Sequence record: PP886230.1 | Length of the DNA stretch: 64,000 nucleotides | Strand: one strand, 5' to 3' | Shown: piece after piece, positions 4,125-22,925 of the stretch | How positions within the stretch are numbered: position 1 is the stretch's first letter | How the letters are laid out: the number at the start of each line of letters is the position of its first letter | The notes under the pieces: model-generated | Seen by the model: the letters and a program-made list of their open reading frames with translations, nothing else | The model's database searches: none | Told to the model about the DNA's origin: nothing | Made by a program: the position numbers and the translations under genes

Positions 4125-4150
4125 AAAGGGAGCCTTAGCTCCCTTTTTTT
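4125..4150 (+). terminator. Intrinsic terminator between convergent gp46 and gp49-like genes
   Basis: AAAGGGAGC-CTTA-GCTCCCTTT followed by a T run. Confidence 0.8.
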
Positions 4151-4626
4151 ATATCAACCATATTTAATTTACCGTCCTTAATCAGCTTTCTAGCTTGCTT
4201 TACACGAGCAGTAGTGTTACTACCAGGGACAACTCCTAACCCTTCCAGAATCGCGTTTTGCTGTGTTGCTGGAAGCCTTTTAAACTTATTAACATCCACA
4301 GTTAGTGCAGTGTGATGTATAACTTGTTCATCGTCAGGAATGCTGTTATTACGCTCTAAGTAATCAGCAAGATTTCTGAGTACCTCATATAATGGTTTAT
4401 CAGTTAAGTGCTTCATATATCGATTGAAGCTGTTTTGTACCTTTCCTTCCCAAGCATTGACTTCATTTTGAAGAACTTGTCTACAATGTTGGTTACCATA
4501 GTGGTAGTGATCCAGTACTGGTTTAGTTATTGGTTCTTTAATTATAGGATCTATTCCATTTTGTTTCTTTAGCAATTCGTTTCGATAGTTTGCAGCATCC
4601 TTACTATCTTTTAATCTTTTTTTCAT
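4135..4626 (-). CDS. gp49: Holliday junction resolvase, endonuclease VII-like, lacking zinc cysteines
   Basis: QNG..VLDH.H..VNAWEG.V...FNR..L.NL..YL and IH...FKRL align with T4 endo VII (LDHDH..CNAAEGQMKHKFNR). Confidence 0.8.
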   Translation of the reverse strand: MKKRLKDSKDAANYRNELLKKQNGIDPIIKEPITKPVLDHYHYGNQHCRQVLQNEVNAWEGKVQNSFNRYMKHLTDKPLYEVLRNLADYLERNNSIPDDEQVIHHTALTVDVNKFKRLPATQQNAILEGLGVVPGSNTTARVKQARKLIKDGKLNMVDIKKGS

Positions 4627-4656
4627 AATTCCTCACCAAACTATTTGTTATCAAAA

Positions 4657-4664
4657 TATTTATA
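4657..4664 (-). promoter_or_regulatory. Late promoter TATAAATA for the endo VII-like gene
   Basis: TATTTATA on +, i.e. TATAAATA on -, ~30 nt upstream of start 4626. Confidence 0.65.
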
Positions 4665-4718
4665 GATTAGTTATTTGCAATATTTTAAGTACTTAATGAA
4701 TATTTTTATAAAAATAGT

Positions 4719-4746
4719 GAGACAACTTTAAAGTTTGTGCTATAAT
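4719..4746 (+). promoter_or_regulatory. Middle-type promoter firing into the non-coding region
   Basis: GAGACA 4719-4724, N16, TG-C-TATAAT ending 4746; no ORF downstream. Confidence 0.75.
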
Positions 4747-4752
4747 GTTTGT

Positions 4753-5240
4753 TGTAGTAATGACAATCCTGTTGAATGCAGAAATGCATATAAATTAGAA
4801 CCTGATCCTATCGAAAATGTAGATGGCAGATGAGCAGTTCAACAGTGCGATGAGCAAAAGAAACCCGTTAGATGTGGGCATAGTTTGAACCCCTCACGGC
4901 AATGCGGCTCAATAAAGAACTCCGATAAGCATACAGAGAGTTCCTAGATAGACATATAAGGATCGCACCTTACCAGATTTGCTAAGGGAGTTTATTAAGT
5001 GATTTTAATAAACAGCCTGAAGTTTGATTGTATAGACTTTCAGGTGAGTGTCAGGATGATTAAGACTGACGACCGTTGCACATGACTGCGATAGAGAGAA
5101 ACAGAGCAACCCGCTTTCGTTCTTAATATATTTTTAAGAAATTCGCAATACAATAAATGCTGAAACCATCAGCGTCAAGAAATAGAGACTTCATTGTCTC
5201 TTTTTTATTGTCTTCATTCCCCTGCGGGGGGATGAAAATG
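4753..5240 (+). ncRNA. Candidate large structured non-coding RNA (family unassigned)
   Basis: No ORF of 60 aa or more in 4627-5462; GC visibly above flanks; at least 10 helices, a GAAA tetraloop, G-U pairs and a multibranch junction; upstream consensus promoter. Confidence 0.6.
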
Positions 5241-5303
5241 TCCTCAACAAATCCCGTCAAGTATTAAATCTTTTAAAGTTCTTTATAATTAATTTAATTA
5301 AAT

Positions 5304-5363
5304 GAATATGAGTTACGTAGTAACGAATATTCTTCAGCTAACGAATGAAATGAGTTAGATGAA
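5304..5363 (+). other. Two ssDNA-type hairpins (GNA triloop plus tandem GA mismatch) in an AT-rich tract; possible origin element
   Basis: GAATAT-GA-GTTAC-GTA-GTAAC-GA-ATATTC and TTCA-G-CTAAC-GA-AT-GAA-AT-GA-GTTAG-A-TGAA. Confidence 0.55.
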
Positions 5364-5462
5364 TCCAATAATATTAAAATTAATCCTTTCATAATTCAAT
5401 TCAAATAATTCTGTAGTTTAAAACCAAAAAAAACCAGCAACAATGTGCTGGCTATATGAAAA

Positions 5463-5672
5463 TTAGTGCTTCTCGTTTTGTTTTTTAATTTTTTTATTAA
5501 AAGACTTAACTAATAAGTCTCTATCTATTAATGGCATATTAAGGAGTGTTCCATAGTCAATGTTATCCATATATACAGAACATTCCATTAGTGCATTTTT
5601 GATTTCTGACTTATTCAGTTCTATCTCCTTCAGTACTTCTTGTATTTCTTCAGGAGATGACTGGAGAAGCAT
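5463..5672 (-). CDS. Small baseplate hub assembly protein (gp51-like, tentative)
   Basis: 69 aa, coupled to the gp26-like gene; L.MP..DR motif. Confidence 0.45.
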   Translation of the reverse strand: MLLQSSPEEIQEVLKEIELNKSEIKNALMECSVYMDNIDYGTLLNMPLIDRDLLVKSFNKKIKKQNEKH

Positions 5673-6508
5673 TACTCGAAAAAATGACTAGGATCATATT
5701 TTAGTCCATCAATTTCCCATTGATGATTACATCCATCACATTCTACTTCCATACTATGAGATACACCAATTTCAAGTACTTCATCCATTTTTTCACGAAT
5801 TAGTTTAAGTACTCCCTTCGATTGTTGTCCAAGCCATTCATTAATAAATTCTTTTTCAACTACTTCATCACCATCTGGTGTTATAATTTTTGCAATAACT
5901 CCACCAATCATATCGAAGTTAAGTTGAGCCATGTTTTCAAATACTTCAGAAAATATTTTTACTTTTTCATCTTTATCAATATCAGCAGTTTCAAGAAACT
6001 TAGTCTTCTGCTGCTCACTGAACATGCGTTCAGCAAACGATGAATATTCTTTCCATGTCAGTGGTCTAAATTCTAAACGTAGTCCATTATCTAAATCAAT
6101 TGATGGGATTTCTTCAAATGCTTGTGCAGTTTCAAGAAGATATGATAGATTACGTTCAAATCGACCTTCTTTTTCACATTCAGGACATACAACGTTAATA
6201 TCATATGTTTCTTCTTTAGAAGCAACTTTAATAGCAATAAGAAGCATTTCAACGTCATTTACATACAACTCATCAGCGTCAATTACATTAGGAACACAGT
6301 TTTCAATAACACGGGATACTGCATCTCCGTTTAGTAACATATCGGGGGTATTAAGTGTCATTTCATCACGTGCACTACGTGCACAAACTCCACATTTGAC
6401 ACCTTTTGGACCTAGAACTCCTTCTTTATAAGGAATAACGCCGTTTGTAACTAACTTAGTACTGATCTCTTCAATTTTAGTGTACTTAGCAAGTGGATTC
6501 ATAGCCAT
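5672..6508 (-). CDS. gp26: Baseplate hub assembly protein, T4 gp26-like
   Basis: ARDE..L.TP..L..G.A...I..C, D...LLIAI..AS, two CxxC pairs (CPEC, CDGC); late promoter upstream. Confidence 0.75.
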   Translation of the reverse strand: MAMNPLAKYTKIEEISTKLVTNGVIPYKEGVLGPKGVKCGVCARSARDEMTLNTPDMLLNGDAVSRVIENCVPNVIDADELYVNDVEMLLIAIKVASKEETYDINVVCPECEKEGRFERNLSYLLETAQAFEEIPSIDLDNGLRLEFRPLTWKEYSSFAERMFSEQQKTKFLETADIDKDEKVKIFSEVFENMAQLNFDMIGGVIAKIITPDGDEVVEKEFINEWLGQQSKGVLKLIREKMDEVLEIGVSHSMEVECDGCNHQWEIDGLKYDPSHFFE

Positions 6509-6638: not shown

Positions 6639-8843
6639 ATGGCTGGAACTACAAGTGATTACCTACTCCAGCAGTTGGTTAATCAAACTAAAGATAACAA
6701 CGATAGTTTGAGTGCTATACGTGAGTTATTGGCTGAAAATATAAAAAATGATAGAAAGAAATCCGGTTCTAAAAGTGGAAAACGTAATGGAAGTAATTCA
6801 TCAAGTGCTGGAAACCGTGGCTCTCGAACAAATAACAAAGCTGATGATGGTAAAGAATTTGGAAAAATATTCAAATCATTATCATCTGAAGTATCGAATG
6901 TCGGCAAAACTATGATGAGTACGTCTGCAAACGTTAGCAATGTTGTAAACTCACTAGGAATGAGTGCATCTTCATTTGCTGGTTCATTAGCAATGATCCC
7001 AGGTCCAGTTGGTGCAGCAGCATCTGCATTCAAATTGGTTGCTGACGCTGGTTTAGCAGTTTATAATGTGTTAAATGCACAGCTTGAAGTTTATAATAGA
7101 ATAAACAGTGCTGGTGTCGCTCTATCTGAAGGTTACGGCTCCATATTAAAAGGTGCTGGTGCATCAATGATGAGTATTGATGCATTTGGTGAAGCATTAC
7201 AAACTCATAGTGCCGTTGTTGCACAATTAGATGGTGCATATGGTGATGGTGTTTCTACATTTGGTAAATTATTGGGTACTGTGCAACAAGCACAAAATCA
7301 ATTAGGTTTATATGGTGTTTCTCAAAAAACATTAACTGATTTAACTGCACGTAATATTAAATTCCAAAAGCAATTTGGTGGAAGAGAAATGTTACGTAGT
7401 ATGGATCAAGCAAAAAGTACTGAACAGTTTATCATGAGTATGACTAAGTTCAGTAAAAGTATGGGTGAGTCAGTTGATGCACTATTAAATAAAACACAAA
7501 ACTTAGATAAATCATTAGACACACGTTCAATGCAAATCGCATTACAAAACTATTCTGGATTATCTAGTAAAGCAGCAGTTGCAACATCAAAAGCATTTAA
7601 CGAAGCTGCTGCCAGTATGGGTGATGCTGGTGCAGATTTTCTACGTTTAATTTCACATCGTTTAACTATTGGTGGAGTACCAGATGATTTATTGACTCCA
7701 GTACTGAACCAATTTGCTGATTTAGGTGAGAACTTGGTACGTAGTGGTGTTACTGATTCACAAGAAATTCGCCGTCAACAATTGGAATTTGTTAAAAAGA
7801 ACAAAGAACTAATAAAGCAAGATTTATTAAATCAGATACAATTAGGAAACACTACGGCAGCAACCTTCAACCAACAACTACTTGATATGGAAGCTGCGAT
7901 TAATGATCCTAAGAGTCAACCAGCAGATAAACTAACACAATTCACTGATAGATTCAATAGATGGATTAGTAAAGAATTTACTGAACCATTTAATAAAATG
8001 TATGCAGATACACAAAATTCTATTGCGGATTACCTTACTGATATTGCAGACCGTACTGATGGTGCATGGGAATTTATCGGAGAGTTAGCACTTGATGGTT
8101 TTGGTTTGGTTCCTATTGCGAAAGATGCAGTTGCGTATTTGGATAGGATTGGTGGTGAGTTTGAGCAGTGGTTAGAAGGGTTAGGTACTGAAATTTTTGG
8201 TAGTGGATATAATAAAGTTTCAGAAGCATTTGATAGCTTTATGAATAACCTAATGGATCTTCCTGGTAAACTTTGGGATTCTGTTAAAGGTTGGTTTGGT
8301 GGATCAGACGACAAAGTAAAAGTAGAAAACAATTCTGTTACCGATGGTGCAGAAAAAGTTAATAATTATTTTGAAGAAAAAATGAATTCATTTGGTGATT
8401 ATATTTCTAGTTCATTTGATGGTTTTTTAAAATGGAATTCAAGTAGAAACTTTAAACAACCAAAACCCCTTGATGAATCAGTTGCTGAAAAACTTATTAG
8501 TAGTGGTCTTGAAAATAAGCCAAGAGCAACTGCGAGAATCGAAAAATCTGAACATGTTGCACCATATGTTACCATAACTCCAAAAACTTTTGATAAATCA
8601 GCATGGGGTCCAAATGAACCACCAATTCAAGCTGAACCGGACGATTATGAGGCCATGAAAGCGATGATAAATAGTGGTAGTAGTATGGCAAATGCTAATA
8701 ATAATGCCACAATATCAGAAGACATGAAAGAGTTACTTAAAAAACTTGCTGATGTTAATGAGCAATCTCTATCTGCCGTGCAACAGACAAATAACTATCT
8801 AAGAACTATCTCTGAAAACACTCAAGGTGAGAGAAACAGTTAA
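6639..8843 (+). CDS. Tape-measure/baseplate hub-like virion protein
   Basis: 734 aa, Ala/Gly/Ser-rich, predicted helical, next to the gp26-like gene and portal. Confidence 0.55.
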   Translation: MAGTTSDYLLQQLVNQTKDNNDSLSAIRELLAENIKNDRKKSGSKSGKRNGSNSSSAGNRGSRTNNKADDGKEFGKIFKSLSSEVSNVGKTMMSTSANVSNVVNSLGMSASSFAGSLAMIPGPVGAAASAFKLVADAGLAVYNVLNAQLEVYNRINSAGVALSEGYGSILKGAGASMMSIDAFGEALQTHSAVVAQLDGAYGDGVSTFGKLLGTVQQAQNQLGLYGVSQKTLTDLTARNIKFQKQFGGREMLRSMDQAKSTEQFIMSMTKFSKSMGESVDALLNKTQNLDKSLDTRSMQIALQNYSGLSSKAAVATSKAFNEAAASMGDAGADFLRLISHRLTIGGVPDDLLTPVLNQFADLGENLVRSGVTDSQEIRRQQLEFVKKNKELIKQDLLNQIQLGNTTAATFNQQLLDMEAAINDPKSQPADKLTQFTDRFNRWISKEFTEPFNKMYADTQNSIADYLTDIADRTDGAWEFIGELALDGFGLVPIAKDAVAYLDRIGGEFEQWLEGLGTEIFGSGYNKVSEAFDSFMNNLMDLPGKLWDSVKGWFGGSDDKVKVENNSVTDGAEKVNNYFEEKMNSFGDYISSSFDGFLKWNSSRNFKQPKPLDESVAEKLISSGLENKPRATARIEKSEHVAPYVTITPKTFDKSAWGPNEPPIQAEPDDYEAMKAMINSGSSMANANNNATISEDMKELLKKLADVNEQSLSAVQQTNNYLRTISENTQGERNS

Positions 8844-8854
8844 GGACGAAAATA

Positions 8855-10594
8855 ATGAGTTGGAAACGACATATGACAGTGGGAAGGTCTAAACTATCGA
8901 CCATCCCAAATCAGTCCAGTAATAGCAATAAATCAACAGGAACGAAAACAAATTTCGCTTCCTATCTTCCTGTTGTATATAATGGATTGGCAAACCGTAC
9001 TGAGCGTTATAGTCAGTATGAGCAAATGGACCAAGATCCTGAAATTAGAACTGCATTGAATATAATTGCTGACTTTTGTACCCAAAGTACTGAAGATTTT
9101 GGTTTACCATATAAAATCAAATATAAAGATGACATTGGTGATACTGAAGTAACGACTATTGAAGATCGTTTAGATGCATGGACTGAACAAAATGATTTTA
9201 AAACACGAATGTATGAAATTGTGCGTGGTCTTCTGAAATATGGTGATCAATTTTTCATTCGAGATCCAGAAACATTCGATTGGTATTGGGTAAGCCCCAA
9301 AAATGTTGAGCAAGTATTTGTTAACGAAGCCACTGGTAAAACACCAGTAATTTATTATATACGTGACGTATCATTAAATTTGAAAGATAAAGTTTTTAGT
9401 AACCTTCAAGTAGGATTTGATAAAACCGCTTATCCAGGAGCTATTCCGACAACAATGGGTGGCGGTGGTTCAGTAGCTGCGGGTGGTGCATCTGGTTTTA
9501 CAAGTCAAGGAAATACTGCTGACCCATTCAGTACTAACGGTCAATTAGACGTTATTCCTGTTGGTGCAGAACACGTAATTCATCTAACGCTAAATACAGG
9601 ACAAGATGGGGTATGGCCTTTTGGTACTAGTATACTTGAGGACGTATTTAAAGTCTATAAGCAAAAAGAACTTCTGGAAGATAGTATCATAATTTATCGT
9701 GTACAACGTGCACCTGAGCGTCGTGTATTTAAAATTGATGTTGGTGATATGCAAGCACACCAAGCGATGGCTTATGTTGAAAGATTTAAAAATGAAATCC
9801 ACCAGCGTAGAATACCTTCAAACAAAGGTGGAAGTACTTCATTAATGGATGCAGCATATAATCCATTAAGCATTTTAGAAGACTACTTTTTCCCACAAAC
9901 TTCTGAAGGTCGTGGTTCAGATGTTCAAACATTACCAGGCGGTGATAACTTAGGACAAATTGATGACTTACGTTATTTTAATAATAAATTGATTCGTGGT
10001 CTTCAAATACCAGCTTCTTATCTACCACAAGGTCCAGATGATGGTGGTGTTTCATTATTTGGTGATGGTGCTACACAAGCTATGGCAAGTGAATTGCGAT
10101 TCAATAATCAATGTATGCGTTATCAACGTTTAGTTGCAAAACATTTTGATGCTGAATTCAAAAGATTTATGGTTAAAAATGGATATAACATTAGTACTTC
10201 ATCTTTTGAAGTTATTATGAATCCACCTATTAACTTAGCTTCTTATCGTAAAGCTGAACTAGATGCTAAACTAATTAATACATATCTTCCTCTTAATGAC
10301 TTGCCTTATATGGCGAAACAAACAATTCTTGAAAAAATGGGCTTTTCTAAAGCTGATATTGTTAAGAATGAACAAATGTGGTTACAAGAGAATCCACAAG
10401 ATGGTTCCCAACCTTCTGGTGGTGAAGAAGATTCCGCTGGATTACAGTCTGTTGGTATTGATGCTCCAAATGATCCTGGAATGGATCTTGGTATTGATGG
10501 AGAAGGTAATTTGGAAAGTGCTGATGCCGAATACCAAGAGCAACAGAGTGGAAGTGGTGGTTTCAACCCTAATAATTTAGGCAATTCTTTTTAA
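8855..10594 (+). CDS. gp20: Portal protein (gp20)
   Basis: LEDSIIIYRVQRAPERRVFKIDVG, EDYFFP...GRGSDVQTLPGG.NLG.IDD..YF..KL..L..P.S motifs of T4-type portals. Confidence 0.95.
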   Translation: MSWKRHMTVGRSKLSTIPNQSSNSNKSTGTKTNFASYLPVVYNGLANRTERYSQYEQMDQDPEIRTALNIIADFCTQSTEDFGLPYKIKYKDDIGDTEVTTIEDRLDAWTEQNDFKTRMYEIVRGLLKYGDQFFIRDPETFDWYWVSPKNVEQVFVNEATGKTPVIYYIRDVSLNLKDKVFSNLQVGFDKTAYPGAIPTTMGGGGSVAAGGASGFTSQGNTADPFSTNGQLDVIPVGAEHVIHLTLNTGQDGVWPFGTSILEDVFKVYKQKELLEDSIIIYRVQRAPERRVFKIDVGDMQAHQAMAYVERFKNEIHQRRIPSNKGGSTSLMDAAYNPLSILEDYFFPQTSEGRGSDVQTLPGGDNLGQIDDLRYFNNKLIRGLQIPASYLPQGPDDGGVSLFGDGATQAMASELRFNNQCMRYQRLVAKHFDAEFKRFMVKNGYNISTSSFEVIMNPPINLASYRKAELDAKLINTYLPLNDLPYMAKQTILEKMGFSKADIVKNEQMWLQENPQDGSQPSGGEEDSAGLQSVGIDAPNDPGMDLGIDGEGNLESADAEYQEQQSGSGGFNPNNLGNSF

Positions 10595-10595
10595 A

Positions 10596-10603
10596 CATAA
10601 ATA
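10596..10603 (+). promoter_or_regulatory. Late promoter CATAAATA
   Basis: Immediately after the portal stop, upstream of the 10668 gene. Confidence 0.55.
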
Positions 10604-10667
10604 ACAGTGTATAAGAATGAGGGTTTATTTTTACCCTCATTTATAATGCATATTTCAAGGAGATCAA

Positions 10668-10895
10668 ATGTTAAAGGACATCTTTGAATCTAGCAGTGAT
10701 TCAATGTACGACCCTGAAGATGATCAGAACGTATATAAAATTACTGATTCCAGAAAACCGAAACTAACATTACAAGTATTAAACAACTTAAGAAAGTACC
10801 GTGAATTTAAAGCACATGAAGAACAACGCCGCAAAAATGTGGTTGCAGTTGTTTATGCCGCTACACCAACTGGTGACGGTTCTGGGTTAATGTAA
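10668..10895 (+). CDS. Small head-module protein (hypothetical)
   Basis: 75 aa with AAGGAG RBS, between portal and prohead core genes. Confidence 0.7.
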   Translation: MLKDIFESSSDSMYDPEDDQNVYKITDSRKPKLTLQVLNNLRKYREFKAHEEQRRKNVVAVVYAATPTGDGSGLM

Positions 10896-10996
10896 ATCAA
10901 AAATCGCACTTTTTAAAGCTTTTAAAAAAGGCGATTTTATTCAGTACTAAATAATATCATACTTTATACGAATGTAATATATCTATGGAGGATATA

Positions 10997-11845
10997 ATGG
11001 CGAATTTAAAACTACTACAAGAAGCAATTGCGGCGTTTGCAAATGGCGAACAAGATATTGCTGATAAAAAAATGCGTAAGTATTTCGTTGAGCAAGCTCA
11101 AGAAATTAACAAACAACTAGAAGAAAGCATGGAAGATGAAGACGACGATGAAGATTGTGAAGTCGAAGTTAAAGTCAAAGATGAAGAAAAGCTTGACGAA
11201 GATTTTGATGTACAACCAGACGAAGGTCTAAATGCTGAAATCGAATACACCCTTGGTGAAGAAGATGAAAGTGCAGAAGAAGAAGTTGAATTCTCTGCTG
11301 ATGCAGATGGTGACGGTGAAGACGATGTTGACGTTGAAGTGAAAGCTGATGCTGATGTTCCTTCCGAAGACCAATGGGAATCAATCCAAGATGCTTTCCG
11401 TGGCCTACAACAAATGTTTGATGAAATCGGTGACGGTGAAGTTGATCTAGATTCTGAAGAAGAAGTAGAAGATAGCGAAGAAGAAGTTGGCGTTGACGGT
11501 GACGACGAATTTGCTGATGTTGAATTCGGTGATGAAAAATTCGGTGAATCCTTCAAACTAGAAAAAGTTGCTCCAGTTGATAAGAAAGAAAAAGCTGGCA
11601 CTCATTCCAAATCTCCAGTAGCACCAGAAGCTAAATCTCCAGTAGCAGGAGCAGAGCCAGTTAAATTCGCTAAGAAAACTGACCAAGCACCACTACTAGA
11701 CCTAGATGATAAATCTGTTCTACCAAAAGATAGTCTAGATCTTGGTAAAAATGCTCGCGGTGAAATGAAAGATGTTAAAGCACCAAAAACTACTGCATCT
11801 AATTCTAAATCACCACTAAGCAAAGCACAACCTAAACTAAAATAA
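10997..11845 (+). CDS. Acidic prohead core/scaffold-like protein
   Basis: GGAGG RBS before ATG 10997; very Asp/Glu-rich centre, Lys/Pro-rich tail; head-operon position. Confidence 0.7.
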   Translation: MANLKLLQEAIAAFANGEQDIADKKMRKYFVEQAQEINKQLEESMEDEDDDEDCEVEVKVKDEEKLDEDFDVQPDEGLNAEIEYTLGEEDESAEEEVEFSADADGDGEDDVDVEVKADADVPSEDQWESIQDAFRGLQQMFDEIGDGEVDLDSEEEVEDSEEEVGVDGDDEFADVEFGDEKFGESFKLEKVAPVDKKEKAGTHSKSPVAPEAKSPVAGAEPVKFAKKTDQAPLLDLDDKSVLPKDSLDLGKNARGEMKDVKAPKTTASNSKSPLSKAQPKLK

Positions 11846-11865
11846 ATATCTGAAAGGAGATCATT

Positions 11866-12489
11866 ATGAGTAGTATGATTCGTGAATGGTCTTCATTCAA
11901 TGATTCTAAAGTTGTTTTGGAACATCGTGATAATGGATTTGGTGGGCGTGACTGCTATCTTCGTGGTATTGCTATTCAAGCCGACCAACGAAATTTGAAC
12001 GAGAGAATTTACCCTTTATCTGAAATTACAAGGGCAGTAAATAACATGAACCAGCGTTTAGCTAAAGGTGAAAGCATTCTTGTTGAATGTGACCATCCAG
12101 AAACACTAACTATTAACCTAGACCGAGTAGCAGCAATGATTACTAAGGTTTGGATGGAAGGTGCTAATGGTATGGCAGAAATCAAACTACTTGATACTGC
12201 ACATGGTCAAAATATCCGTAAAATGCTAGAGGCTGGTGTAAAACTTGGTGTAAGTTCTCGCGGTTCCGGTAACGTTGATTATAATGGAATAGTTTCTGAT
12301 TTTGAAATTATCACTATTGATATTGTTGCTCAACCTAGTGCTCCAGAAGCATACCCAACAGCGGTATTTGAATCTCTGATGAGTAAGTACGGATCACCTT
12401 GTAATAGTTCTAAAAAAATCACTGAATCTAAAAAAGTAAATAATTTAGATTCTGAAATATACGATTTTTTCAAGAAATTAAAAGGTTAA
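11866..12489 (+). CDS. gp21: Prohead protease (gp21)
   Basis: N.N.RIYP, ECDHP (catalytic His), GVSSRGSG (catalytic Ser), DIVAQPSAPEAY. Confidence 0.95.
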   Translation: MSSMIREWSSFNDSKVVLEHRDNGFGGRDCYLRGIAIQADQRNLNERIYPLSEITRAVNNMNQRLAKGESILVECDHPETLTINLDRVAAMITKVWMEGANGMAEIKLLDTAHGQNIRKMLEAGVKLGVSSRGSGNVDYNGIVSDFEIITIDIVAQPSAPEAYPTAVFESLMSKYGSPCNSSKKITESKKVNNLDSEIYDFFKKLKG

Positions 12490-12500
12490 CATTTTAAAAA

Positions 12501-12508
12501 TATAAATA
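12501..12508 (+). promoter_or_regulatory. Late promoter TATAAATA (scaffold gene)
   Basis: Exact T4 late consensus upstream of 12556. Confidence 0.7.
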
Positions 12509-12555
12509 TCTGTATGTTGAAGTACAGATATTTCAGTACTTAAAGGAGAGAACGA

Positions 12556-13671
12556 ATGTCTAAATTAGAAAAGCTTCTAAAAGAATCATCTCTTTCTGAT
12601 GAGGCAAAACAGCTAATTCAGGAAGCATGGAATGAAGAAAAGAATACACTAGCCGCAGAGATGCGTGAAGAAATGAAAGGCCGTTATCAGCAAGATTTGG
12701 CTGAACTAACCGAAGGTTTGAATACTATGGTTACTCAAGTCATTGCTGAAGAAATGGGTGCTGTATATGAAGAGAAAAAACGTCTCGTTGAAGATCGTGT
12801 AACTCTACGTAAAACACTAAGCAATTTCTCTGCGTTTTCAAACTCTGTTTTGGCTGAAGAAGTTAAACAAATGCGTAAAGAACGTAAGCATCTTCATGAA
12901 TGCATGGGTAAATTCGTTAATTTTTCTAACGGTATACTAGCAGAAGAGCTAAAAGAATTCCACACTGAAAAACGTCAACTAGTTGAAACTCGCGTTAAAC
13001 TACTTGCTGAAGGTTCACGTCAAATTGCTGAAGCTCGTAATAACTTCATCAAACGTACATCTGAAAGTGCTGCTAAATATATTGCAGAAACCACTCAGAA
13101 GAATCTATATGCGTTGAAACAAGATCTAGTGGAAGCAAAACAAAATATGTTTGGTCGTAAAATCTTTGAAGCATTTGCTCAAGAGTTTAATGTCAAACAA
13201 TTTAATGAAAACTCATTGCTACGTTCCCTAACTGAATCAATTAAATCTAAAGAAGATGAAATTGCTCAAGTTAAGCAAGAACTACATGAAACTGCTAATG
13301 CGGTTAAAGCTGCTAAAACCAAACTACGTATTATGGAAGATGCACAAGCACGTAATGCGATTATGTCTGAACTAGTAAAACCACTAACTGCACAGCAAAA
13401 ACAAATTATGGAATCCCTTCTAGCTACTTCACCTACTGAAAAGCTTAAAGAAGATTTCAGCAAGTACCATAAGTCAGTACTTAACGGTACTAAAGTAAAT
13501 GAATCTGCTACCACTCGTCAAGCAGTTCAGTCTTCCGCTAAGAAAACTCTTGCAGAAGGTAAAGTAATCACTGGCAACCGTCAGGCTATTGTTGAAAGCG
13601 AAGAAATGACCGCTGACGATATGGCATTCCTAAAAGAACTCGATGTTCTTTCAGGTATCAATAAAAAATAA
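12556..13671 (+). CDS. gp22: Major prohead scaffold protein (gp22-like)
   Basis: Long coiled-coil protein between protease and major capsid genes; GRKIFEAF motif. Confidence 0.8.
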   Translation: MSKLEKLLKESSLSDEAKQLIQEAWNEEKNTLAAEMREEMKGRYQQDLAELTEGLNTMVTQVIAEEMGAVYEEKKRLVEDRVTLRKTLSNFSAFSNSVLAEEVKQMRKERKHLHECMGKFVNFSNGILAEELKEFHTEKRQLVETRVKLLAEGSRQIAEARNNFIKRTSESAAKYIAETTQKNLYALKQDLVEAKQNMFGRKIFEAFAQEFNVKQFNENSLLRSLTESIKSKEDEIAQVKQELHETANAVKAAKTKLRIMEDAQARNAIMSELVKPLTAQQKQIMESLLATSPTEKLKEDFSKYHKSVLNGTKVNESATTRQAVQSSAKKTLAEGKVITGNRQAIVESEEMTADDMAFLKELDVLSGINKK

Positions 13672-13709
13672 ACATTTTAAAGCATTTTAATAATCAAATT
13701 TTTCAGTTC

Positions 13710-13717
13710 TATAAATA
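13710..13717 (+). promoter_or_regulatory. Late promoter TATAAATA (major capsid gene)
   Basis: Exact consensus, inside an inverted repeat TTTTTCAGT/ACTGAAAAA. Confidence 0.75.
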
Positions 13718-13762
13718 ATATCATACTGAAAAACGAATATAACATCTTTAAGGAGATATATA

Positions 13763-14938
13763 ATGTCACAACTACTAAATGAATCCAAATGGGTAGCAGT
13801 AAAAGAGAAACTAGTTGAAGGTCTACAGGGTACTCGTAAGTCTGTAATGGAAACTGTTCTTGATAACCATCGTAAAGTTATGCTAACTGAATCCGCAACT
13901 TCTGGTGCAACTACCGCTGGTAACATCGCTACTCTAAACAAAGTGATTCTACCAATTATGCGTCGTGTAATGCCAACCGTTATTGCTAACGAAATCATCG
14001 GTGTTCAACCAATGACTGGTCCAGTTGGTCAGATCCACACCCTACGTGTGCAATATGCTGATAACGCACCTGGTGTTATCGCTGGTGAAGAAATGCTTTC
14101 TCCATACAAAATCGCTAAATCCTACTCTGGTGATCTAAATGCGGATAATAGCAACCCACAAGCTGCTCCTACTAGCCAACTAGAAGGTACTATGGGTCGT
14201 CGCGTTAACATCCGTATTCTACGTGAAACTGTTGAAGCGAAATCTCGTCGTCTATCTGCACGTTGGACTGTTGAATCTGCACAAGATGCTCAATCCCAAC
14301 ATGGTGTTGACGTTGAAGCAGAACTAATGGCTGCAATCGCTCAAGAAGTTACCGTAGAAATCGACCAAGAGCTACTAAGCCGTCTACGTGCACTACCTGG
14401 TGCTGCTGCTGTAACTTATGACCAATCTAAAGTTACTGGTGTTGCAACCTTCGTTGGTGATGAGCACGCTGCTCTAGCAACTCTAATTAACCGTCAAGCA
14501 AACGAAGTTGCTCGTCGTACTAAGCGTGGTGCTGCAAACTGGGCTGTTGTTTCCCCAACTGCACTAACCATTCTACAATCTGCTACTACTTCTAGCTTTG
14601 CACGTACCACTGAAGGTACTTTCGAAGCACCAACTAACGTTAAGTTTGTAGGTACTCTAAACAGCACTATGCGTATTTTTGTTGATACTTATGCAAGTGA
14701 TGCAGAAGATATTCTAATTGGTTATAAAGGTAATGCAGAAACTGATGCTGGGGTGTTCTATTGCCCATACATCCCACTAATGGCTTCCGGTACTGTAATG
14801 GACCCTAACACTGGGGAACTCGTGACCACATTCCTTACCAGGTATGGTTATGTACAATTGACTGATAGTACTTCTTCTCTTGGTAACGCTGCTGACTACT
14901 ACAGCAAAATCGCTATCAAAAACGTTACTTTCATGTAA
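13763..14938 (+). CDS. gp23: Major capsid protein (gp23)
   Basis: IIGVQPMTGPVGQI..LR, AKSRRLSARWTVESAQD...HG.D.EAEL, G.FYCPYIPL, TRYG; strong codon bias. Confidence 0.96.
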   Translation: MSQLLNESKWVAVKEKLVEGLQGTRKSVMETVLDNHRKVMLTESATSGATTAGNIATLNKVILPIMRRVMPTVIANEIIGVQPMTGPVGQIHTLRVQYADNAPGVIAGEEMLSPYKIAKSYSGDLNADNSNPQAAPTSQLEGTMGRRVNIRILRETVEAKSRRLSARWTVESAQDAQSQHGVDVEAELMAAIAQEVTVEIDQELLSRLRALPGAAAVTYDQSKVTGVATFVGDEHAALATLINRQANEVARRTKRGAANWAVVSPTALTILQSATTSSFARTTEGTFEAPTNVKFVGTLNSTMRIFVDTYASDAEDILIGYKGNAETDAGVFYCPYIPLMASGTVMDPNTGELVTTFLTRYGYVQLTDSTSSLGNAADYYSKIAIKNVTFM

Positions 14939-14981
14939 TTGTAATAGATTTAAAAGATTTAATCAAGAAATTAAAAACAAT

Positions 14982-15010
14982 AGGGACTCTTCGGAGTCCC
15001 TTTTCTTTTT
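14982..15010 (+). terminator. Intrinsic terminator after major capsid gene
   Basis: AGGGACTC-TTCG-GAGTCCCT plus T tract. Confidence 0.9.
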
Positions 15011-15076
15011 GTGTTGACACACCATCTTTTTTGTGTAATAATACGCGTACATTATAAATGAAGAAGAGGAATTTTC

Positions 15077-15997
15077 ATGAAACCAAATGAAGAAAAATTT
15101 ATTAATACAGTGAATGAAAAGTACGGTACTGGTGTGTATTTGTTTGATAAAATGGTATATATTAATGCTCATAAACAGGTTGAACTTTATTGTGTAGAAG
15201 GTGGTCATTATTTCAAAATCACTCCTATGCAAATAGTCCGACCTTCTGCAAAAGGATGTAACATTTGTCAAAAAAACACAGCATACACGACTGAAACGTT
15301 TATTGAAAAAGTTAAAACCATCCATCCAACATTGTCATTTGAGAAAACTATCTACAAAAAACAAAGTGACAGTAATGGGCGAGTCATCGTTACGTGTCAT
15401 AATGATCCGAATGATGTGCATGATTGGATTGTATCTGCCAATACTTTGTTAAGAGGTAAATCAGGGTGTGGTGTTTGTTCTGGTAAAGGCGGGAGGACAT
15501 TGGAGCAATTTGTCAAAGAAGCAAAAAAAGTACATGGTGATGATTATGATTATTCTGAATCATGCTATACTGGTAGTGAAGAATATATGGATATGAAGTG
15601 TAATAATTGCAATGAAAAATTCAAACAACAGCCCAAAGCACACCTTTCAGGACGCGGGTGTCCTAACTGTGGTAAGTATGGATACCAACCATCAAAACCT
15701 GGATATTTCTATGTACAAAAACTAACTAACAATAACAAGACGGTGTACAAATATGGGATCACTGGTGATATGAAACGCCGTGTCAACGAACAAAGCCGCA
15801 ATTCTGAGTTCGAGCATGAAGTACTTATAGAACGCTACTTTGAAGATGGCAATCAACCATTACTGTTGGAAAAGTTCATAAAGAAATACATTGAAAGTGG
15901 TGTTGTAAGTACTGAAGAGTTACCGTCAGGATTTACTGAAACATTTGATGCTAAGTATCTTGAAAGTGTTTTAGAAATTGTAAATACTTTTAAGTAA
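15077..15997 (+). mobile_element. Free-standing homing endonuclease-like gene: three Cys/His zinc-binding repeats plus C-terminal GIY-YIG-type domain
   Basis: Repeats F...K.H...Y.......C..H.......L.G.GC..C (DUF723-like) x3; YFYVQ...YKYGIT...R...E. Confidence 0.7.
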
Positions 15998-16020
15998 ACA
16001 ATCTAAAGGAGTTGACACGG

Positions 16021-16371
16021 ATGTTAACTGTATACAAATTTAACAAAGAAGAGTACTTAAAGAGTCAGTACTCAAATATAGAAATAAATGTTCCTTATGG
16101 TACGTTAGTTGGATATGATGAAGCCACTGAAACATTGTATTATAATGATGATAGATTGGATTATAGTTTAGATTCTTTCATAGAAGATATACTTAATACA
16201 CATACTGAAGATATGTTGTATGAAGAATACATAGATCATTATAGAGAACGTATGTCGGTGCTGCATTCTGATGCTCCTGTACTAAACATAGCACAAGAAC
16301 CATCGGAATTTCAGCCACATAATCCTTTTCAACGTTTAATTGATATTGGTTTAAAATTCACTATTAGTTGA
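16021..16371 (+). CDS. Hypothetical protein
   Basis: AAAGGAG RBS 9 nt before ATG 16021; 116 aa. Confidence 0.65.
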   Translation: MLTVYKFNKEEYLKSQYSNIEINVPYGTLVGYDEATETLYYNDDRLDYSLDSFIEDILNTHTEDMLYEEYIDHYRERMSVLHSDAPVLNIAQEPSEFQPHNPFQRLIDIGLKFTIS

Positions 16372-16410
16372 TAGATAAATATCTCCATATTAATGATGGA
16401 GATTGAATCT

Positions 16411-16719
16411 ATGTCACAGATATGTTATGTTATAATAAACTCTGCATGGCCTGACTATGTTAAGATTGGTTTCACTTCTAAATCTGAAATGACAGAGCGT
16501 TTGAGAACGTATCAGACAGCTACCCCGTTTCGTGATTTTGAAGTTTATCATGAAGTTCACTTTGAAGACGCACGTTTAGCTGAAAAAGAGATACATAAAA
16601 GGCTTAAACAAATGAATGCAACTAGACAACCAAACACAGAGTGGTTTAAAATGTCTAAAAAGATAGCAGCAAACATCATTGATTCTGTGTGGGATGATAT
16701 GGATAACGACTTGCTATAG
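16411..16719 (+). CDS. T5orf172-family (GIY-YIG superfamily) protein
   Basis: YVI......YVKIGFT....ERL..YQT..P.......AEK.IH..L......EWF. Confidence 0.8.
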   Translation: MSQICYVIINSAWPDYVKIGFTSKSEMTERLRTYQTATPFRDFEVYHEVHFEDARLAEKEIHKRLKQMNATRQPNTEWFKMSKKIAANIIDSVWDDMDNDLL

Positions 16720-16720
16720 G

Positions 16721-16728
16721 AATAAATA
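16721..16728 (+). promoter_or_regulatory. Late promoter AATAAATA (tail fibre)
   Basis: NATAAATA 32 nt before start 16760. Confidence 0.55.
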
Positions 16729-16759
16729 TAGTATATATTAATCATAAAGGGATTTATAC

Positions 16760-18370
16760 ATGAGCATAAGTTTTAATAACCCATTGGATACAATGACCAG
16801 TACTGGTGCTAATGGATCTTTAGAACTAATAGTGCTTGGTGGTACACCAACTAACCCAAGACCTATTCGTTTTAATTCGTCATCAGTTATTATACCAGTA
16901 CAAACGTTACCTACTGGTGAACAAGGTGCAATGGTTTTTGATCGAAACGAATTAGTTTTGAAGTATCATAACGGTACAAGTTGGATTGCAGTATATGATA
17001 CTGATACTATTTTGGAACCAATTAGAATTTCATTAGATGAAGTAAACAGAAAATTAAATTTAAAAGTAGAAAGTGTAACATACAGTAGTAGTACTGTTCC
17101 TAGTGCAAGTATTAGTGGAACAAACTTAAACATTGTATTCCCTACTGCTTCTAGTGGTGGTTCTGGTCCAACTGGTCTTTACACTTCACTTAAACCTGGT
17201 GCTATTACACAATATTCATTGACTTCTGGTCAATCTGTTGCTAGTATACGTGAACAAATGTCAGGGCAATCGAATGGACAAAGTGGACGAAACGGTTCAC
17301 AAGGTGCTCCGTGGAAAACGTCTGACGGTTGGTGTTTTGCTGATGGTATGTGGTGGCAATGGGAGGGGGAAAATGGTACAATTACCAAACAAGTACCAAA
17401 CCTTAACCAAAACGCGTATTTAAAAGGTATAACAACATCAGGTGTAACTAAAACTGATAGTGTTATTGGTAGTAGTGGTAACATTAGTGGAACTGTATTG
17501 AGTGTTGCCCAGTTACCATCACACTCATTTAGTTTTAGTGGAACCACTGGTGCTGCTGGTCGTCATGGTCATAGTCAAGCACTAAAAGGTATGGACCGTA
17601 GTGGTCTAAATGCGTTAACTTCAAGTAATGATAACGGTATACCAACTGTAATCAATAACATTAACGAAGCACCAGACCACATTCACTCATTTAGTGGAAA
17701 CACTAACACACTTGGTGGAAACCAACCACACTATCATGGTATTAGCAACATTGATGTGGAACACTTTAACGTTGCATACCTATATAACATTGCTGAATCT
17801 AACGTCGCATTGAGTGAAAAAGTTGCAAACACTCGTTATGTACTAAAAACTGGTGATACAATGACTGGTTCATTGACTATTGCAAACAGTGCGTCAATTA
17901 AGTCAAATGATACATCATTAGTTCTATATTTCCGTAACGCAAGCGGTGGTGAGCGTGCGGCAGTGTATCATAACTCTTCAAATAATACATTGAGATTACG
18001 TTCCGGTGGAGCAGAAGTTACTGTAAACTCTTCTGGTACTTTAGCTGCTCCATCATTAACTGTTTCTAACAACTCAGCTACTGTTGGTGGTAAAAATATT
18101 GTTCGTTCAATTAACGGTACTGCTGCTGATGCTAGTGGCAACGTTACTTTGCAAATTAGTACTAATAACGTACAAAGTATTCGTTTGAGTGCACGTATTG
18201 AAACAAGTAAAATACCTGATTCTTCATGGACATATACACCAGAAGGTGCATTTATGGATGGCGTATGGATTTCTGTTAATGGTAGTTCAGGCACTCACTT
18301 AGAACGAATTAGTTATCGCTATGTTCAAATGCAAATAAATGGTAACTGGGAAACAGTACGTCAACAATAA
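16760..18370 (+). CDS. Tail fibre protein with tail-collar domain and HxH fibre segment
   Basis: GWCFADG...VPNL collar motif, L...QLPSH.H..H.H.H repeats, C-terminal GGKNIVRSING..DASGNV..IRL..YRYVQ..INGNW.TV. Confidence 0.85.
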   Translation: MSISFNNPLDTMTSTGANGSLELIVLGGTPTNPRPIRFNSSSVIIPVQTLPTGEQGAMVFDRNELVLKYHNGTSWIAVYDTDTILEPIRISLDEVNRKLNLKVESVTYSSSTVPSASISGTNLNIVFPTASSGGSGPTGLYTSLKPGAITQYSLTSGQSVASIREQMSGQSNGQSGRNGSQGAPWKTSDGWCFADGMWWQWEGENGTITKQVPNLNQNAYLKGITTSGVTKTDSVIGSSGNISGTVLSVAQLPSHSFSFSGTTGAAGRHGHSQALKGMDRSGLNALTSSNDNGIPTVINNINEAPDHIHSFSGNTNTLGGNQPHYHGISNIDVEHFNVAYLYNIAESNVALSEKVANTRYVLKTGDTMTGSLTIANSASIKSNDTSLVLYFRNASGGERAAVYHNSSNNTLRLRSGGAEVTVNSSGTLAAPSLTVSNNSATVGGKNIVRSINGTAADASGNVTLQISTNNVQSIRLSARIETSKIPDSSWTYTPEGAFMDGVWISVNGSSGTHLERISYRYVQMQINGNWETVRQQ

Positions 18371-18380
18371 GGAATGTGTA

Positions 18381-18896
18381 ATGCAACTAACAAATTTTAA
18401 GATGTATGAAAAAGAAGGTGGTAATCCTAATTCTTTGTATATGATGTCCGATGAAGGTATGGATTGGTATGAATCTCGTGAATTGTTTGACATTAATAAA
18501 GCAAAATTTATGTATGATATTAACGGTTTAATTGTTTCAGCATCATATAACATTTATGATCTAGTACCTTTAGGTTTTAGTGTTTCTGAAATTGAATATG
18601 ATGGTGATATTAACAAACTTTATGGTATGGTTTACGATGGAAATACTATTCATGACTATATTGAAACTAAAGAAGAAAAAATTGAACGCCTAAAAAATGA
18701 ATTATCTAATTTGAAATACATTGCAATTCAAGAACTTGGACACTTAAAAACGGCTATGGATCTTGAGTTAGCAACTGATGAAGAAGCTGTATTGTTTGTG
18801 AAATTGAAAGATTATGTAACGCAATTGAATTCAATCAAACCAGCAGACATGATCAAGAAAACATTTTCATTTCCAGTTAAACCGGAAAAAAAATGA
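18381..18896 (+). CDS. Tail fibre assembly chaperone
   Basis: Directly after the fibre; SDEG.DWYES..F....K..YD..G.I, L..A.DL..ATDEE...P.KP. Confidence 0.85.
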   Translation: MQLTNFKMYEKEGGNPNSLYMMSDEGMDWYESRELFDINKAKFMYDINGLIVSASYNIYDLVPLGFSVSEIEYDGDINKLYGMVYDGNTIHDYIETKEEKIERLKNELSNLKYIAIQELGHLKTAMDLELATDEEAVLFVKLKDYVTQLNSIKPADMIKKTFSFPVKPEKK

Positions 18897-18922
18897 GACA
18901 ACACGTAAAGACGTGATACAAT
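18895..18922 (+). promoter_or_regulatory. Middle-type promoter (dsbA-like gene/DNA polymerase)
   Basis: GAGACA-N16-TACAAT with TG extension. Confidence 0.65.
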
Positions 18923-18986
18923 TAAGTCATCTCACCGATTGTGGTGAGGTGACATTTTTTTGAAAACACACATGGAGAAATACAAA

Positions 18987-19289
18987 ATGGCTAAATCTAA
19001 AAAAGAAGTTAAAGTTGAAATTCGTGATCTAAACGATGAACAACGTAAACGTCTCGGTGACGCACTTAACAACATTGTTGTACAACTAACTTTCATTGAT
19101 GATACCAAAGCATCCTTATCTGATTTTGTTTCTAGTGTTTCTGATGAACTTGGTATCGATGCATCTGATATCAAACAAGCTGCACAACGTATGTACAAAG
19201 GTGATTACTTTGACAAACAAAATAAACTCGATAATATCGAAACTATTCTTAGTGTTACTAATAATCTTCCACAAGCAGATGATTACTAA
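18987..19289 (+). CDS. dsbA: Double-stranded DNA-binding protein, T4 DsbA-like
   Basis: SDELGIDASDIKQAAQRMYKGDY resembles T4 DsbA KDELGVDGKMFNRLLALYHKDN; GGAGA RBS. Confidence 0.6.
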   Translation: MAKSKKEVKVEIRDLNDEQRKRLGDALNNIVVQLTFIDDTKASLSDFVSSVSDELGIDASDIKQAAQRMYKGDYFDKQNKLDNIETILSVTNNLPQADDY

Positions 19290-19311
19290 TTAGTACTAAA
19301 ATATATTAAAT

Positions 19312-19339
19312 AGCCTCCAATGACGGAGGCTTTCTTTTT
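19312..19339 (+). terminator. Intrinsic terminator
   Basis: AGCCTCC-AATGAC-GGAGGCT plus TTCTTTTT. Confidence 0.75.
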
Positions 19340-19368
19340 AACTTAATAAACGTAAGGGAATACAAACG

Positions 19369-22300: not shown

Positions 22301-22374
22301 GTATTTTGGATATGGATATTGGTATTCATGAAAAAAGTACTGCGTCAGTAAACAATGGATTCTTCACTTGGTAA
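19369..22374 (+). CDS. gp43: Family B DNA polymerase with 3'-5' exonuclease (gp43)
   Basis: Exo FDIETD, GWNSEFFD, YKLDYIA; pol DFNSLYP, KILLNSLYG, YGDTDS, KKRY. Confidence 0.97.
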   Translation: MYIDAYMERKRTGDILHVVERKNGKRILRELDPVYEYYVESPQGTHKTVYGTMAKHFEFQTQAQMNKSVEQHKSEGLRIFESDCNITFKTLAKEYMGKGSPDLNIVFFDIETDFHKKFGYAPPSDPFNRVTAISLYQSWTGKDYVLTLPPADMEIYEAQDIVRQLNEETNDPNSTVILYTDEKEMFMEFFSLIDDSDVISGWNSEFFDIPYMINRTKKIFNEATTARWCLWNKKPNSREADNFGKTVQTYDLVGRVHLDYLALYKKHAGQVEQSYKLDYIAEKVTKENKVSYEGSLDKLYREDYITFLRYSKQDSILLKKIDAKCDYINLHNRLAHKECVLISTTMGSVALIDTAIINLAHTRGEVVFNKAPKDDLEFDPEMEYYGEDGEEEDEKISAKAAGAWVQDPVLGLVSDLGCTDFNSLYPTVLRTLGMSTECILGQLRQDYTDAYLAAKIQEQKNKSKSKSFEPDWTAAWHGLFAAVEFTMVHEKSEETLIVDLEDGSSFKATGKELYDIIFAEDSTIVLSANGTLFDKSKSGVIPDILTQWYSERKAQQKMVIDYKHMYTDGWEFNGYEKVEPLLSNYTPGTMFRTNIHDNDPVYLLRKEIGKGQWDEVAKLIVENGLVLKDGRIFCPKEEKDYFKQRSAFWKQNQQIRKILLNSLYGALLNKGSRFFDKRLGQSVTLTGRSMTKHMASRINEITTGVYNHQGGSVIYGDTDSVYFSVTHYLKEQGIPYNLSKEEIVDMYIKIGEEVGESFPSFMHEMFNTGIEKGKIVGADLEMVGSRGLFLKKKRYAILKYWEDGFRKDIDGKPGEIKAMGLEIKRSDTPKYIQNFLEETLIALLVGESEQQLKQRVREFKDVFKDMPVHEKGSPKTVKNYTNLEAEYQLTGKCKVGHVLAGIQWNRLREVYDDKSVPEVTDGTKVIVCNLKDNPMGIKAVGYPIDCVEYLPEWFLELPFDTEKMEEIVLTKKLENIFGILDMDIGIHEKSTASVNNGFFTW

Positions 22375-22385
22375 GGAGTAATAAT

Positions 22386-22824: not shown

Positions 22825-22833
22825 TAAAAAATT

Positions 22834-22861
22834 GAGACAAGCATCATTTTTGAGATATAAT
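22834..22861 (+). promoter_or_regulatory. Middle-type promoter (clamp-like gene)
   Basis: GAGACA-N16-TATAAT. Confidence 0.7.
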
Positions 22862-22925
22862 GGTGCTTGTAGTAATCTTACATAAAAACATTTTTTGATT
22901 AACAAATAAAACGGAGAATTATATA

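Follow-up and report, generated by a model that had tools for sequence, protein, structure and literature searches.

Judged from its sequence and from those of its relatives, an RNA gene in the 64,000-nucleotide stretch of record PP886230.1 analysed here (the window) belongs to a new family of large non-coding RNAs (~500-600 nt) with multiple pseudoknots that has not been described before. The gene spans 4753 to ~5261 and probably extends to ~5360, on the plus strand of a gap (4627-5462) in what the sequence identifies as a PBECO4/121Q-like Asteriusvirus, a Rak2-like jumbo myophage; across the region, identity is 100% with the Escherichia phages PBECO4 and phAPEC6 and ~99.9% with 121Q. A first-pass annotation, made from the letters of the window, had placed a promoter-driven, densely structured RNA candidate at 4753-5240 and had offered two readings, a new or divergent large phage RNA or a structured primer RNA for a replication origin. 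The first of these is supported by folding, by covariation and by the absence of an Rfam family. A structured element is indeed present at the proposed position, but conservation continues to 5261 in every copy and, less securely, for ~100 nt more to ~5360 (two hairpins, in most copies). The element combines the features that operationally define a large structured non-coding RNA, since it is non-coding, conserved across genera and held together by several compensated helices. Its multicopy nature was beyond the reach of a reading of a single window.

The plus strand folds at -132.1 kcal/mol with z = -4.42, and none of 100 dinucleotide shuffles was as good, while z was -2.39 for the minus strand. 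We aligned 24 non-redundant copies with MAFFT, without fitting them to any structure; a further alignment (A3) comprised 28 sequences. RNAalifold predicted 73 pairs, 41 of them with compensatory changes, and a column-pair scan without prior structure recovered the same helices plus a pseudoknot helix of 7 bp, PK1. A hand-written structure of 22 helices, including three pseudoknots, was counted on the MAFFT alignment A1. In this structure 79% of cells are paired, compared with 39-44% after a shift of the 3' partners by 1-3 columns, and the covariation score is 0.322 versus 0.06-0.11 after this shift; 0 of 500 shuffles reached the observed values. Pairing amounts to 91-100% in P2, S1, P3, P4, P5, PK1, P9, P10, P11, P14 and P15 and to 82% in P8, and each of these helices except P4 contains at least one compensatory pair (just one in P15). 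At least 12 helices of the plus strand, including three pseudoknots, are kept by compensatory changes. Folding better than shuffled controls and covarying helices in relatives, both named in the first-pass annotation as decisive for its proposal, were thereby found. Conserved G-U pairs (e.g. UG:23, GU:24, UG:20) would turn into A-C mismatches if the other strand was read. Because these pairs are strand-specific and the promoter points in the same direction, we consider the plus strand to be the functional one.

Across the copies, invariant blocks are separated by stretches that vary in sequence and length. The blocks comprise CGAAAAUGUAG, AGAUGAG, GAAACCCGU, CACGGCAAU, GAUAGACAUAU, CUAAGGGAG and GACCGU, as well as GAGAGAAAC...ACCCGCUUUC, CGUCA, CCCC/GGGGGG and AAAUCYCGUCA.

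The RNA begins with a 5' pseudoknot domain (4769-4848) made of P1, P1a, P2 and S1. P1 (4769-4776/4838-4845) is complementary in nearly every homologue, with at least nine different sequence pairs; it is poorly aligned by MAFFT and was checked sequence by sequence, comparing the loop after GAUGAG with the 5' segment. Inside P1 lie the variable GNRA hairpin P1a (4777-4788) and P2 (4802-4829), which carries the conserved loop GAAAAUGUA and is 93.5% paired, with compensatory changes in 7 of 8 pairs. S1 (4834-4836/4846-4848), a helix of 3 bp, closes the loop whose bases make up the 3' strand of P1 and is 100% paired, its middle pair being split between CG (9), AU (7) and UA (7). P3 (4851-4855/4907-4911; 100% paired, three compensatory pairs) encloses P4 (4865-4868/4896-4899; 100% paired, nearly invariant), which has a variable apex, and the joining sequences GAAACCCGUUAG and CACGGCAAU of this P3/P4 region (4851-4911) are invariant columns. 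In the hairpin P5 (GAACUC/GAGUUC, 4917-4943) pairing reaches 97.9% and 6 of 6 pairs are compensatory. P6 (UAAGG/CCUUA, 4957-4972) covaries by eye (A-U, G-C, G-U) but is just 57% paired on MAFFT columns, because its loop varies in length. The single-stranded CUAAGGGAG (4982-4990), invariant in the alignments, leads to the variable hairpin P7 (4990-5013), a length-variable region into which a module is inserted in other copies.

The hairpin P8 (5016-5044), with 8 of 9 pairs compensatory, provides one side of PK1: its loop AUUGUAU (5027-5033) pairs with AUACAAU (5148-5154), the two strands being ~120 nt apart. PK1 is 99.4% paired, four of its seven pairs are compensatory and three are invariant. 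The hairpin P9 follows (UGUCAG/CUGACG, 5049-5071; 90.9% paired, four compensatory pairs). P10 (5075-5079/5106-5110; 100% paired, three compensatory pairs) crosses P11 (5087-5091/5143-5147; 100% paired, four compensatory pairs). In this core pseudoknot (5075-5154) the invariant GAUAGAGAGAAACAGAGCAACCCGCUUUCG lies between P10 and P11, the 3' strand of PK1 comes directly after, and the invariant GAGAGAAAC...ACCCGCUUUCG is enclosed together with the variable hairpin P12 (5120-5139), the second site of module insertion. Further downstream, the hairpin P14 (AGAGAC/GUCUCU) and a run of six U residues (U6) occupy 5184-5207. P14 is 97.7% paired with five compensatory pairs; together with U6 it scored as terminator-like yet lies inside the conserved element, and it is absent from the PBECO4 copies c3 and c4. 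P15 (5213-5236), a GC-rich hairpin of 10 bp formed by UUCAUUCCCC and GGGGGAUGAA, is 93% paired and mostly invariant. No convincing covariation was seen for a terminal helix between the 5' leader and the sequence after the U tract.

Thirteen helices had been proposed in the first-pass annotation, and seven of them are kept by the relatives, namely P1, P5 (GAACTC/GAGTTC), P8 (CCTGAAG/CTTTCAGG), P9 (GTCAG/CTGAC), P10 (GTTGC/GCAAC), P14 (GAGAC/GTCTC) and the 10-bp CCCC/GGGGG hairpin P15. One, TAAGG/CCTTA (P6), covaries by eye. Three more, ATGCA-GAAA-TGCAT, GTTTATTAA/TTAATAAAC and TTCTTAA/TTAAGAA, are present in the window copy but sit on variable helix tips. The remaining two found no support. The closure of a three-way junction by CAATAAA/TTTATTG was rejected, because it competes with the far better supported PK1, in which its 5' arm pairs with the loop of the CCTGAAG hairpin, and the GCTGA/TCAGC hairpin is just 30% paired in relatives. 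P2, S1, P3, P4, P11 and PK1 had been missed.

At the 3' side, the near-invariant ACAAAUCCCGUCAAG occupies 5247-5261, and its AAAYCYCGUCA is invariant in 28 of 28 sequences of A3. The AT-rich extension at 5262-5360 is the counterpart of the P16 region of relatives and contains two hairpins, one at 5311-5323 and one at 5338-5358 (loop GAAUGAAAUGA); it is partly diverged in the window copy and is presumed to belong to the same transcript as the core. In relatives, P16 has a conserved loop, AACGAAGUGA, and is 65-73% paired on MAFFT columns, and P17 is 89.7% paired with six compensatory pairs; P17 is missing or diverged in the window copy. Directly 3' of the invariant CGUCA, all copies in A3 show an A/T box (TATWAAA or TATAAT) at a fixed position, in the window at 5262-5275. 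In sequence the box is similar to a late promoter of the T4 type or to a -10 element, and since it is promoter-like, the P16-P17 tail could be a separate transcript that starts from it.

Several copies carry an inserted module of ~35-45 nt (consensus ...GUACAAUAUAGAUCCGUC...; ...AAAUUU..GUACAAUAUAGAUCCGUCUAAAAUU...), which, depending on the copy, occupies the tip of P7 or that of P12 or both tips, or is missing from both. It is present in the PBECO4 copies c2 (two sites), c3 and c4 and also in CBB, BF and the island copies described below, and absent from the window copy, c1. A role of the module as a DNA-binding site was considered and discarded; a search of the PBECO4 genome found it in the RNA copies only.

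As the first-pass annotation had stated, the gap 4627-5462 lacks any open reading frame (ORF) of 60 aa or more, the longest having 45 aa. Stop codons occur in all six frames across 4753-5365, and gap runs in the alignment of the RNA locus, sorted by length modulo 3, gave 369, 94 and 29. Since there are stops in every frame and indels are not multiples of three, the locus is non-coding, and for the same reasons the small ORFs that are annotated across RNA loci in several GenBank records are probably spurious. Up to four such short "hypothetical proteins" are annotated over the equivalent of 4627-5462 in PP886230, PQ390715, PQ330092, OR699282 and others. The GC content, described earlier as above that of the flanks, is 38.7% at 4753-5207 compared with 20.6% in the upstream spacer and 22-24% downstream. 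The DNA 3' of 5262 is AT-rich (22% GC), as a DNA-unwinding element of a T4-type origin would be, but so is the intergenic DNA of the phage in general.

A sigma-70-type promoter with an extended -10 element (TGcTATAAT, 4738-4746) lies at 4717-4746 on the plus strand and matches 10 of 12 consensus positions plus the TG. Its form is GTGAGA/GAGACA-N16-18-TATAAT with TG, that is, a perfect TATAAT with a weak -35, and transcription would start near 4753-4754. TATAAT is nearly invariant 5' of the copies in A1. The extended -10 sequence TGNTATAAT occurs 20 times in the window where 7.1 are expected, a nearly three-fold excess, and 17 of the 20 are on the plus strand, the main coding strand; examples are located at 37-45, 26442-50, 31738-46 and 48145-53. 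Because of this enrichment, we regard the RNA promoter as the ordinary extended -10 type of the phage. The ~50 nt around it are similar to other promoter regions of the window (22824, 31711, 48117). T4 middle promoters are marked by a MotA box with a TGCTT-type consensus. By eye, no MotA-box-like TGCTT near -30 was seen in 4700-4740, 5' of TATAAT, and for this reason the "middle-type" label given to the promoter in the first-pass annotation is unsupported, while a promoter pointing into the gap is indeed present.

The RNA could not be assigned to any known family. With Rfam 15, the whole window gave 0 matches at the gathering score, with ROOL, GOLLD, OLE, HEARO and raiA included in the search. 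At E up to 10, the region 4500-5600 returned weak, unrelated small-RNA matches on the flanks only, and at E up to 1 nothing was found on the element in six homologue loci. Of RNase P RNA, transfer-messenger RNA (tmRNA) and group I and II introns, just tmRNA gave a match, at 5.5 bits (E = 9.9). ARAGORN detected no tRNA or tmRNA in the window. These results agree with the earlier remark that no tmRNA, RNase P or group I signature could be matched. A likeness to group I introns, in which P10-P11-P12 resemble the P3-P7-P8 topology, is superficial, because there is no P4-P6 domain between the 5' strands; short motifs reminiscent of the conserved regions of RNase P were likewise superficial on inspection. 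Our literature searches found no description of the family. The suggestion that an Hfq-like and a KTSC-domain protein encoded in the window could be partners remained unsupported, and phmmer with E. coli Hfq found nothing in the window.

In its general character the RNA is closest to ROOL and GOLLD (and also OLE and raiA), which likewise comprise several hundred nucleotides with many covarying helices and pseudoknots; ROOL and GOLLD are, like the present RNA, found on phages, prophages and other mobile elements. It differs from them in having no Rfam match in sequence or structure, in residing in jumbo myophages of Enterobacterales and in occurring as 4-5 diverged paralogues per genome. In further contrast to ROOL and GOLLD, no tRNA gene was found in the window that holds the present copy. 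Long non-coding RNAs (lncRNAs), ncRNA001-004, have been defined by RNA sequencing in phage PA5oct, which is reported to be related to 121Q, PBECO4 and RaK2, where two of the four account for 1-5% of the phage reads at the time points sampled (PMC7318152). They are long non-coding jumbo-phage transcripts, as is predicted for the present RNA, but ncRNA001 and ncRNA002 are not homologous to it: nhmmer found no match in PA5oct 7000-24000, which covers both, and the conserved blocks are absent by eye from ncRNA002.

Homologues were found in 72 of 50,697 phage records when the promoter was removed from the query. Each record has 4-5 places that match, and all belong to Rak2-like jumbo phages whose hosts are Escherichia, Klebsiella, Salmonella, Erwinia, Yersinia, Serratia, Cronobacter, Pectobacterium or "Xanthomonas". 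PBECO4 has four copies in annotation gaps on the minus strand of its record, at 304919-305436 (the window copy), 37965-38506, 93655-94126 and 195097-195493; each lies in a gene-free gap with its own TATAAT, and they are 70-85% identical to the window copy. Between genera, the RNA core is 70-77% identical, compared with 66-75% for the endonuclease VII gene and 65-70% for the hub gene, the neighbours of the window copy, and the spacer upstream of the promoter shows no conservation. The best match in Serratia phage BF, XbC2 and fHe-Yen9-04 has a different context, upstream of an ADP-ribosylglycohydrolase or of unrelated genes. The genes upstream and downstream of different copies are mutually unrelated, and c1 has no co-oriented downstream gene.

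A scan with the invariant-block pattern GAGAGAAAC-N-G-NNNN-ACCCGCTTTC detected 21 loci in IMG/VR, 19 on contigs of ~350 kb and two on contigs of 23 and 34 kb, and 27 loci in metagenomes. A looser IMG/VR pattern, GACCGT-N14-24-GAGAGAAAC, returned 120 loci, and all of the new ones were chance matches according to nhmmer. In bacterial genomes the scan gave two matches, one by chance (Lewinella) and one in Citrobacter amalonaticus P55, where the homologue is full-length (365 bits), as it is on related metagenome contigs. The Citrobacter copy is part of a chromosomal island (segment 1845-7000) that adjoins ppdD/hofB and encodes, in this order, a large serine recombinase, the RNA, a 165-aa ORF, a divergent cI-like S24 repressor, a Ner-like helix-turn-helix protein and two small membrane or secreted proteins. 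On a metagenome contig, an island of the same type has a reverse transcriptase and its 299-aa partner as cargo. Furthermore, 2 of 5,426 complete E. coli genomes contain a full-length, 78%-identical copy, without any annotation over the RNA, in an island beside ffs (LR-29-1, segment 4791-15685), in which a tyrosine integrase is broken by an IS3 element and the cargo consists of DuOB, DUF488 and DUF4326. The cargo of the islands (reverse transcriptase and partner; DuOB, DUF488 and DUF4326) looks defence-like. Both island types have a single copy of the RNA as a core component and also encode a membrane protein and a conserved secreted protein of 118 aa. We recognised no replication protein or initiator in the islands, and apart from the DUF4326 cargo gene no protein common to phages and islands was found (tblastn, E < 0.01). 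Among 72,556 plasmids, ColE1-type replicons included, the island copy had no match (blastn, distant mode).

We placed 35 copies in a tree, and those from the islands fall within the phage diversity. The four PBECO4 paralogues group with each other and not with their positional orthologues in other genera, at modest support (82/79) and with long paralogue branches, which suggests gene conversion or lineage-specific duplication. Two much more divergent members (~200 bits) were observed on metagenome contigs (1086-1594; 6-530), next to genes that resemble the N-terminus of the PBECO4 virion protein gp323. Because of this neighbourhood, the family would reach to more distant, unsampled relatives of these phages.

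In the window, the gap is flanked on the left by the gene for an endonuclease VII homologue (4135-4626, minus strand) and on the right by a 69-aa ORF and the baseplate-hub protein gene (5463-6508, minus strand). A strong intrinsic terminator on the minus strand (5432-5453; CCAGCA...TGCTGG followed by T9) ends this convergent baseplate-hub/69-aa operon. It is kept in EJP2, Munch, Hallingskeid, CBB and GAP32 and is not part of the RNA.

We favour, at roughly even confidence, the view that the element encodes a trans-acting structured RNA that is made by the host RNA polymerase and acts on a host component. The host polymerase would transcribe each copy as an independent unit, and the transcript would fold into a compact knotted core and act in trans, most likely alone or on a conserved host component and not through a phage-specific partner. 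A conserved knotted core with variable, module-accepting tips is the pattern of RNAs that work through their three-dimensional fold, and we therefore suppose that this RNA does so as well. The choice of a host component, or of the RNA alone, follows from the fact that phages and islands share an enterobacterial host but no detectable protein. A riboswitch-like leader is unlikely, because the neighbours of the copies are unrelated and c1 lacks a co-oriented downstream gene.

Several points weigh against a trans-acting RNA. The transcript, its ends and its abundance are predicted from the DNA, and no expression data for the RNA were found in the literature. The terminator-like P14 with U6 is located upstream of the strongly conserved P15 and AAAUCCCGUCA, so that the 3' end of the mature RNA is ambiguous and two products may be made. 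Four dispersed copies with their own promoters, each with a G-run hairpin followed by AT-rich DNA, would also fit cis-acting replication origins, and the absence of a recognisable replication protein from the islands would be explained by a protein-independent, RNA-primed origin. The analysis identified neither a target nor a partner nor a catalytic signature of the RNA, and the missing shared protein of phages and islands was judged by tblastn at E < 0.01 only.

A tentative and rather unlikely possibility, drawn by analogy, is that the RNA is a ribozyme or forms an RNA-only homo-oligomeric assembly of the ROOL/GOLLD kind, with PK1 pairing between molecules. GOLLD, ROOL and OLE form RNA-only homo-oligomers according to cryo-electron microscopy (10.1101/2024.12.08.627333). 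The PK1 sequence differs between the paralogues (AUUGUAU and, in alignment register, AUCGAAU, GUCAUAU and AUUGCAU), each matching itself. Because each paralogue has its own self-complementary PK1, the pairing could be intramolecular or homotypic intermolecular. In such an assembly scenario, one phage would make as many as four non-mixing assemblies, and the islands would carry a fifth version, either competing with those of the phage or serving the same purpose.

We consider it rather unlikely that the copies are RNA-primed replication origins, in which each copy would act in cis and its transcript would form a persistent hybrid with the DNA close to the G-run hairpin and the AT-rich stretch. 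This hybrid would be processed to a leading-strand primer, as in ColE1 RNA II or T4 oriF/oriG, and the island copy would serve the excised element. The distribution in PBECO4 fits such a role, with copies dispersed at ~38, 94, 195 and 305 kb of 348 kb and equipped with their own promoter whatever the neighbours, in a phage that has a T4-like replisome and recombination genes (gp46/47-like, UvsX/Y-like, RNase H). The islands, in which we recognised no initiator, are in line with it too, as is the GC-rich hairpin with a G6 run at 5213-5236 that precedes 22%-GC DNA. ColE1 RNA II is ~550 nt long, and the distance from promoter to G-run is of the same order (~470 nt). By analogy to ColE1, transcription from the promoter would yield a structured RNA of ~0.5 kb that is independent of element-encoded proteins and has a G-run near its putative 3' functional end. 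However, plasmids including ColE1-type replicons show no similarity to it. A conserved RNA I-like antisense promoter is also missing, as candidate minus-strand sites at 5054-5027 and 5178-5150 overlap positions that vary or covary between copies. In addition, the terminator-like hairpin and U6 precede the putative hybrid zone, and the core with three pseudoknots and invariant junctions exceeds the needs of known primer RNAs. At T4 origins the promoters are MotA-dependent middle promoters, and the R-loop transcripts are short, unstructured and located inside genes. The present loci share with these origins a T4-like replisome, several dispersed positions and a promoter followed by AT-rich DNA, but they differ in having an extended -10 promoter without a MotA-box-like sequence, a conserved knotted RNA and a location in intergenic gaps. 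The cumulative GC skew of PBECO4 follows gene orientation only and does not decide between the models.

It is quite improbable that the element acts in cis on its transcription unit, as a structured leader or as a boundary cassette consisting of an early promoter, the RNA, a terminator and a late-promoter-like A/T box. It would then control downstream read-through or RNA stability or, for c1, send antisense transcription into the convergent baseplate operon. Co-oriented genes do follow three of the four PBECO4 copies, the copies in BF, XbC2 and Yen9-04 and the copy of the Citrobacter island; ~10 nt separate the end of P17 from the ribosome-binding site downstream in Serratia phage BF, and both the internal terminator-like hairpin and the positionally conserved TATWAA-like box after CGUCA would suit such a cassette. 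Nevertheless, these downstream genes are mutually unrelated, c1 has none in the same orientation, no alternative pairing covaries with the terminator arms, and a conserved knotted core of 450 nt is far larger than known leaders. That the locus is not an RNA at all but a conserved DNA element with protein-binding sites, or a decayed or missed protein gene, is scarcely tenable: three or four small "hypothetical proteins" are annotated in some GenBank records, but stops in six frames, indel lengths that are not multiples of three, compensatory changes that preserve pairing, strand-specific G-U pairs and a conserved promoter directly upstream all speak against it.

Few non-coding RNAs are both large and intricately folded, and RNase P, group I and II introns, tmRNA, OLE, ROOL and GOLLD each began a research line of their own. 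The present family adds to the small set of large structured RNAs on mobile elements. Lysates of 121Q have been prepared on MG1655 (10.1101/2023.06.08.544223), and hence the system should be tractable in E. coli K-12. Tractability comes also from the natural paralogues, which provide built-in covariation and swap controls, and from the homologues in chromosomal islands that carry defence-type cargo. If the RNA acts in trans, it would represent a hitherto unrecognised RNA-based step in the takeover of the host by jumbo phages or in the conflict between phages and islands. If the copies are origins, they would provide the first conserved structured primer RNA in a T4-like replication system.

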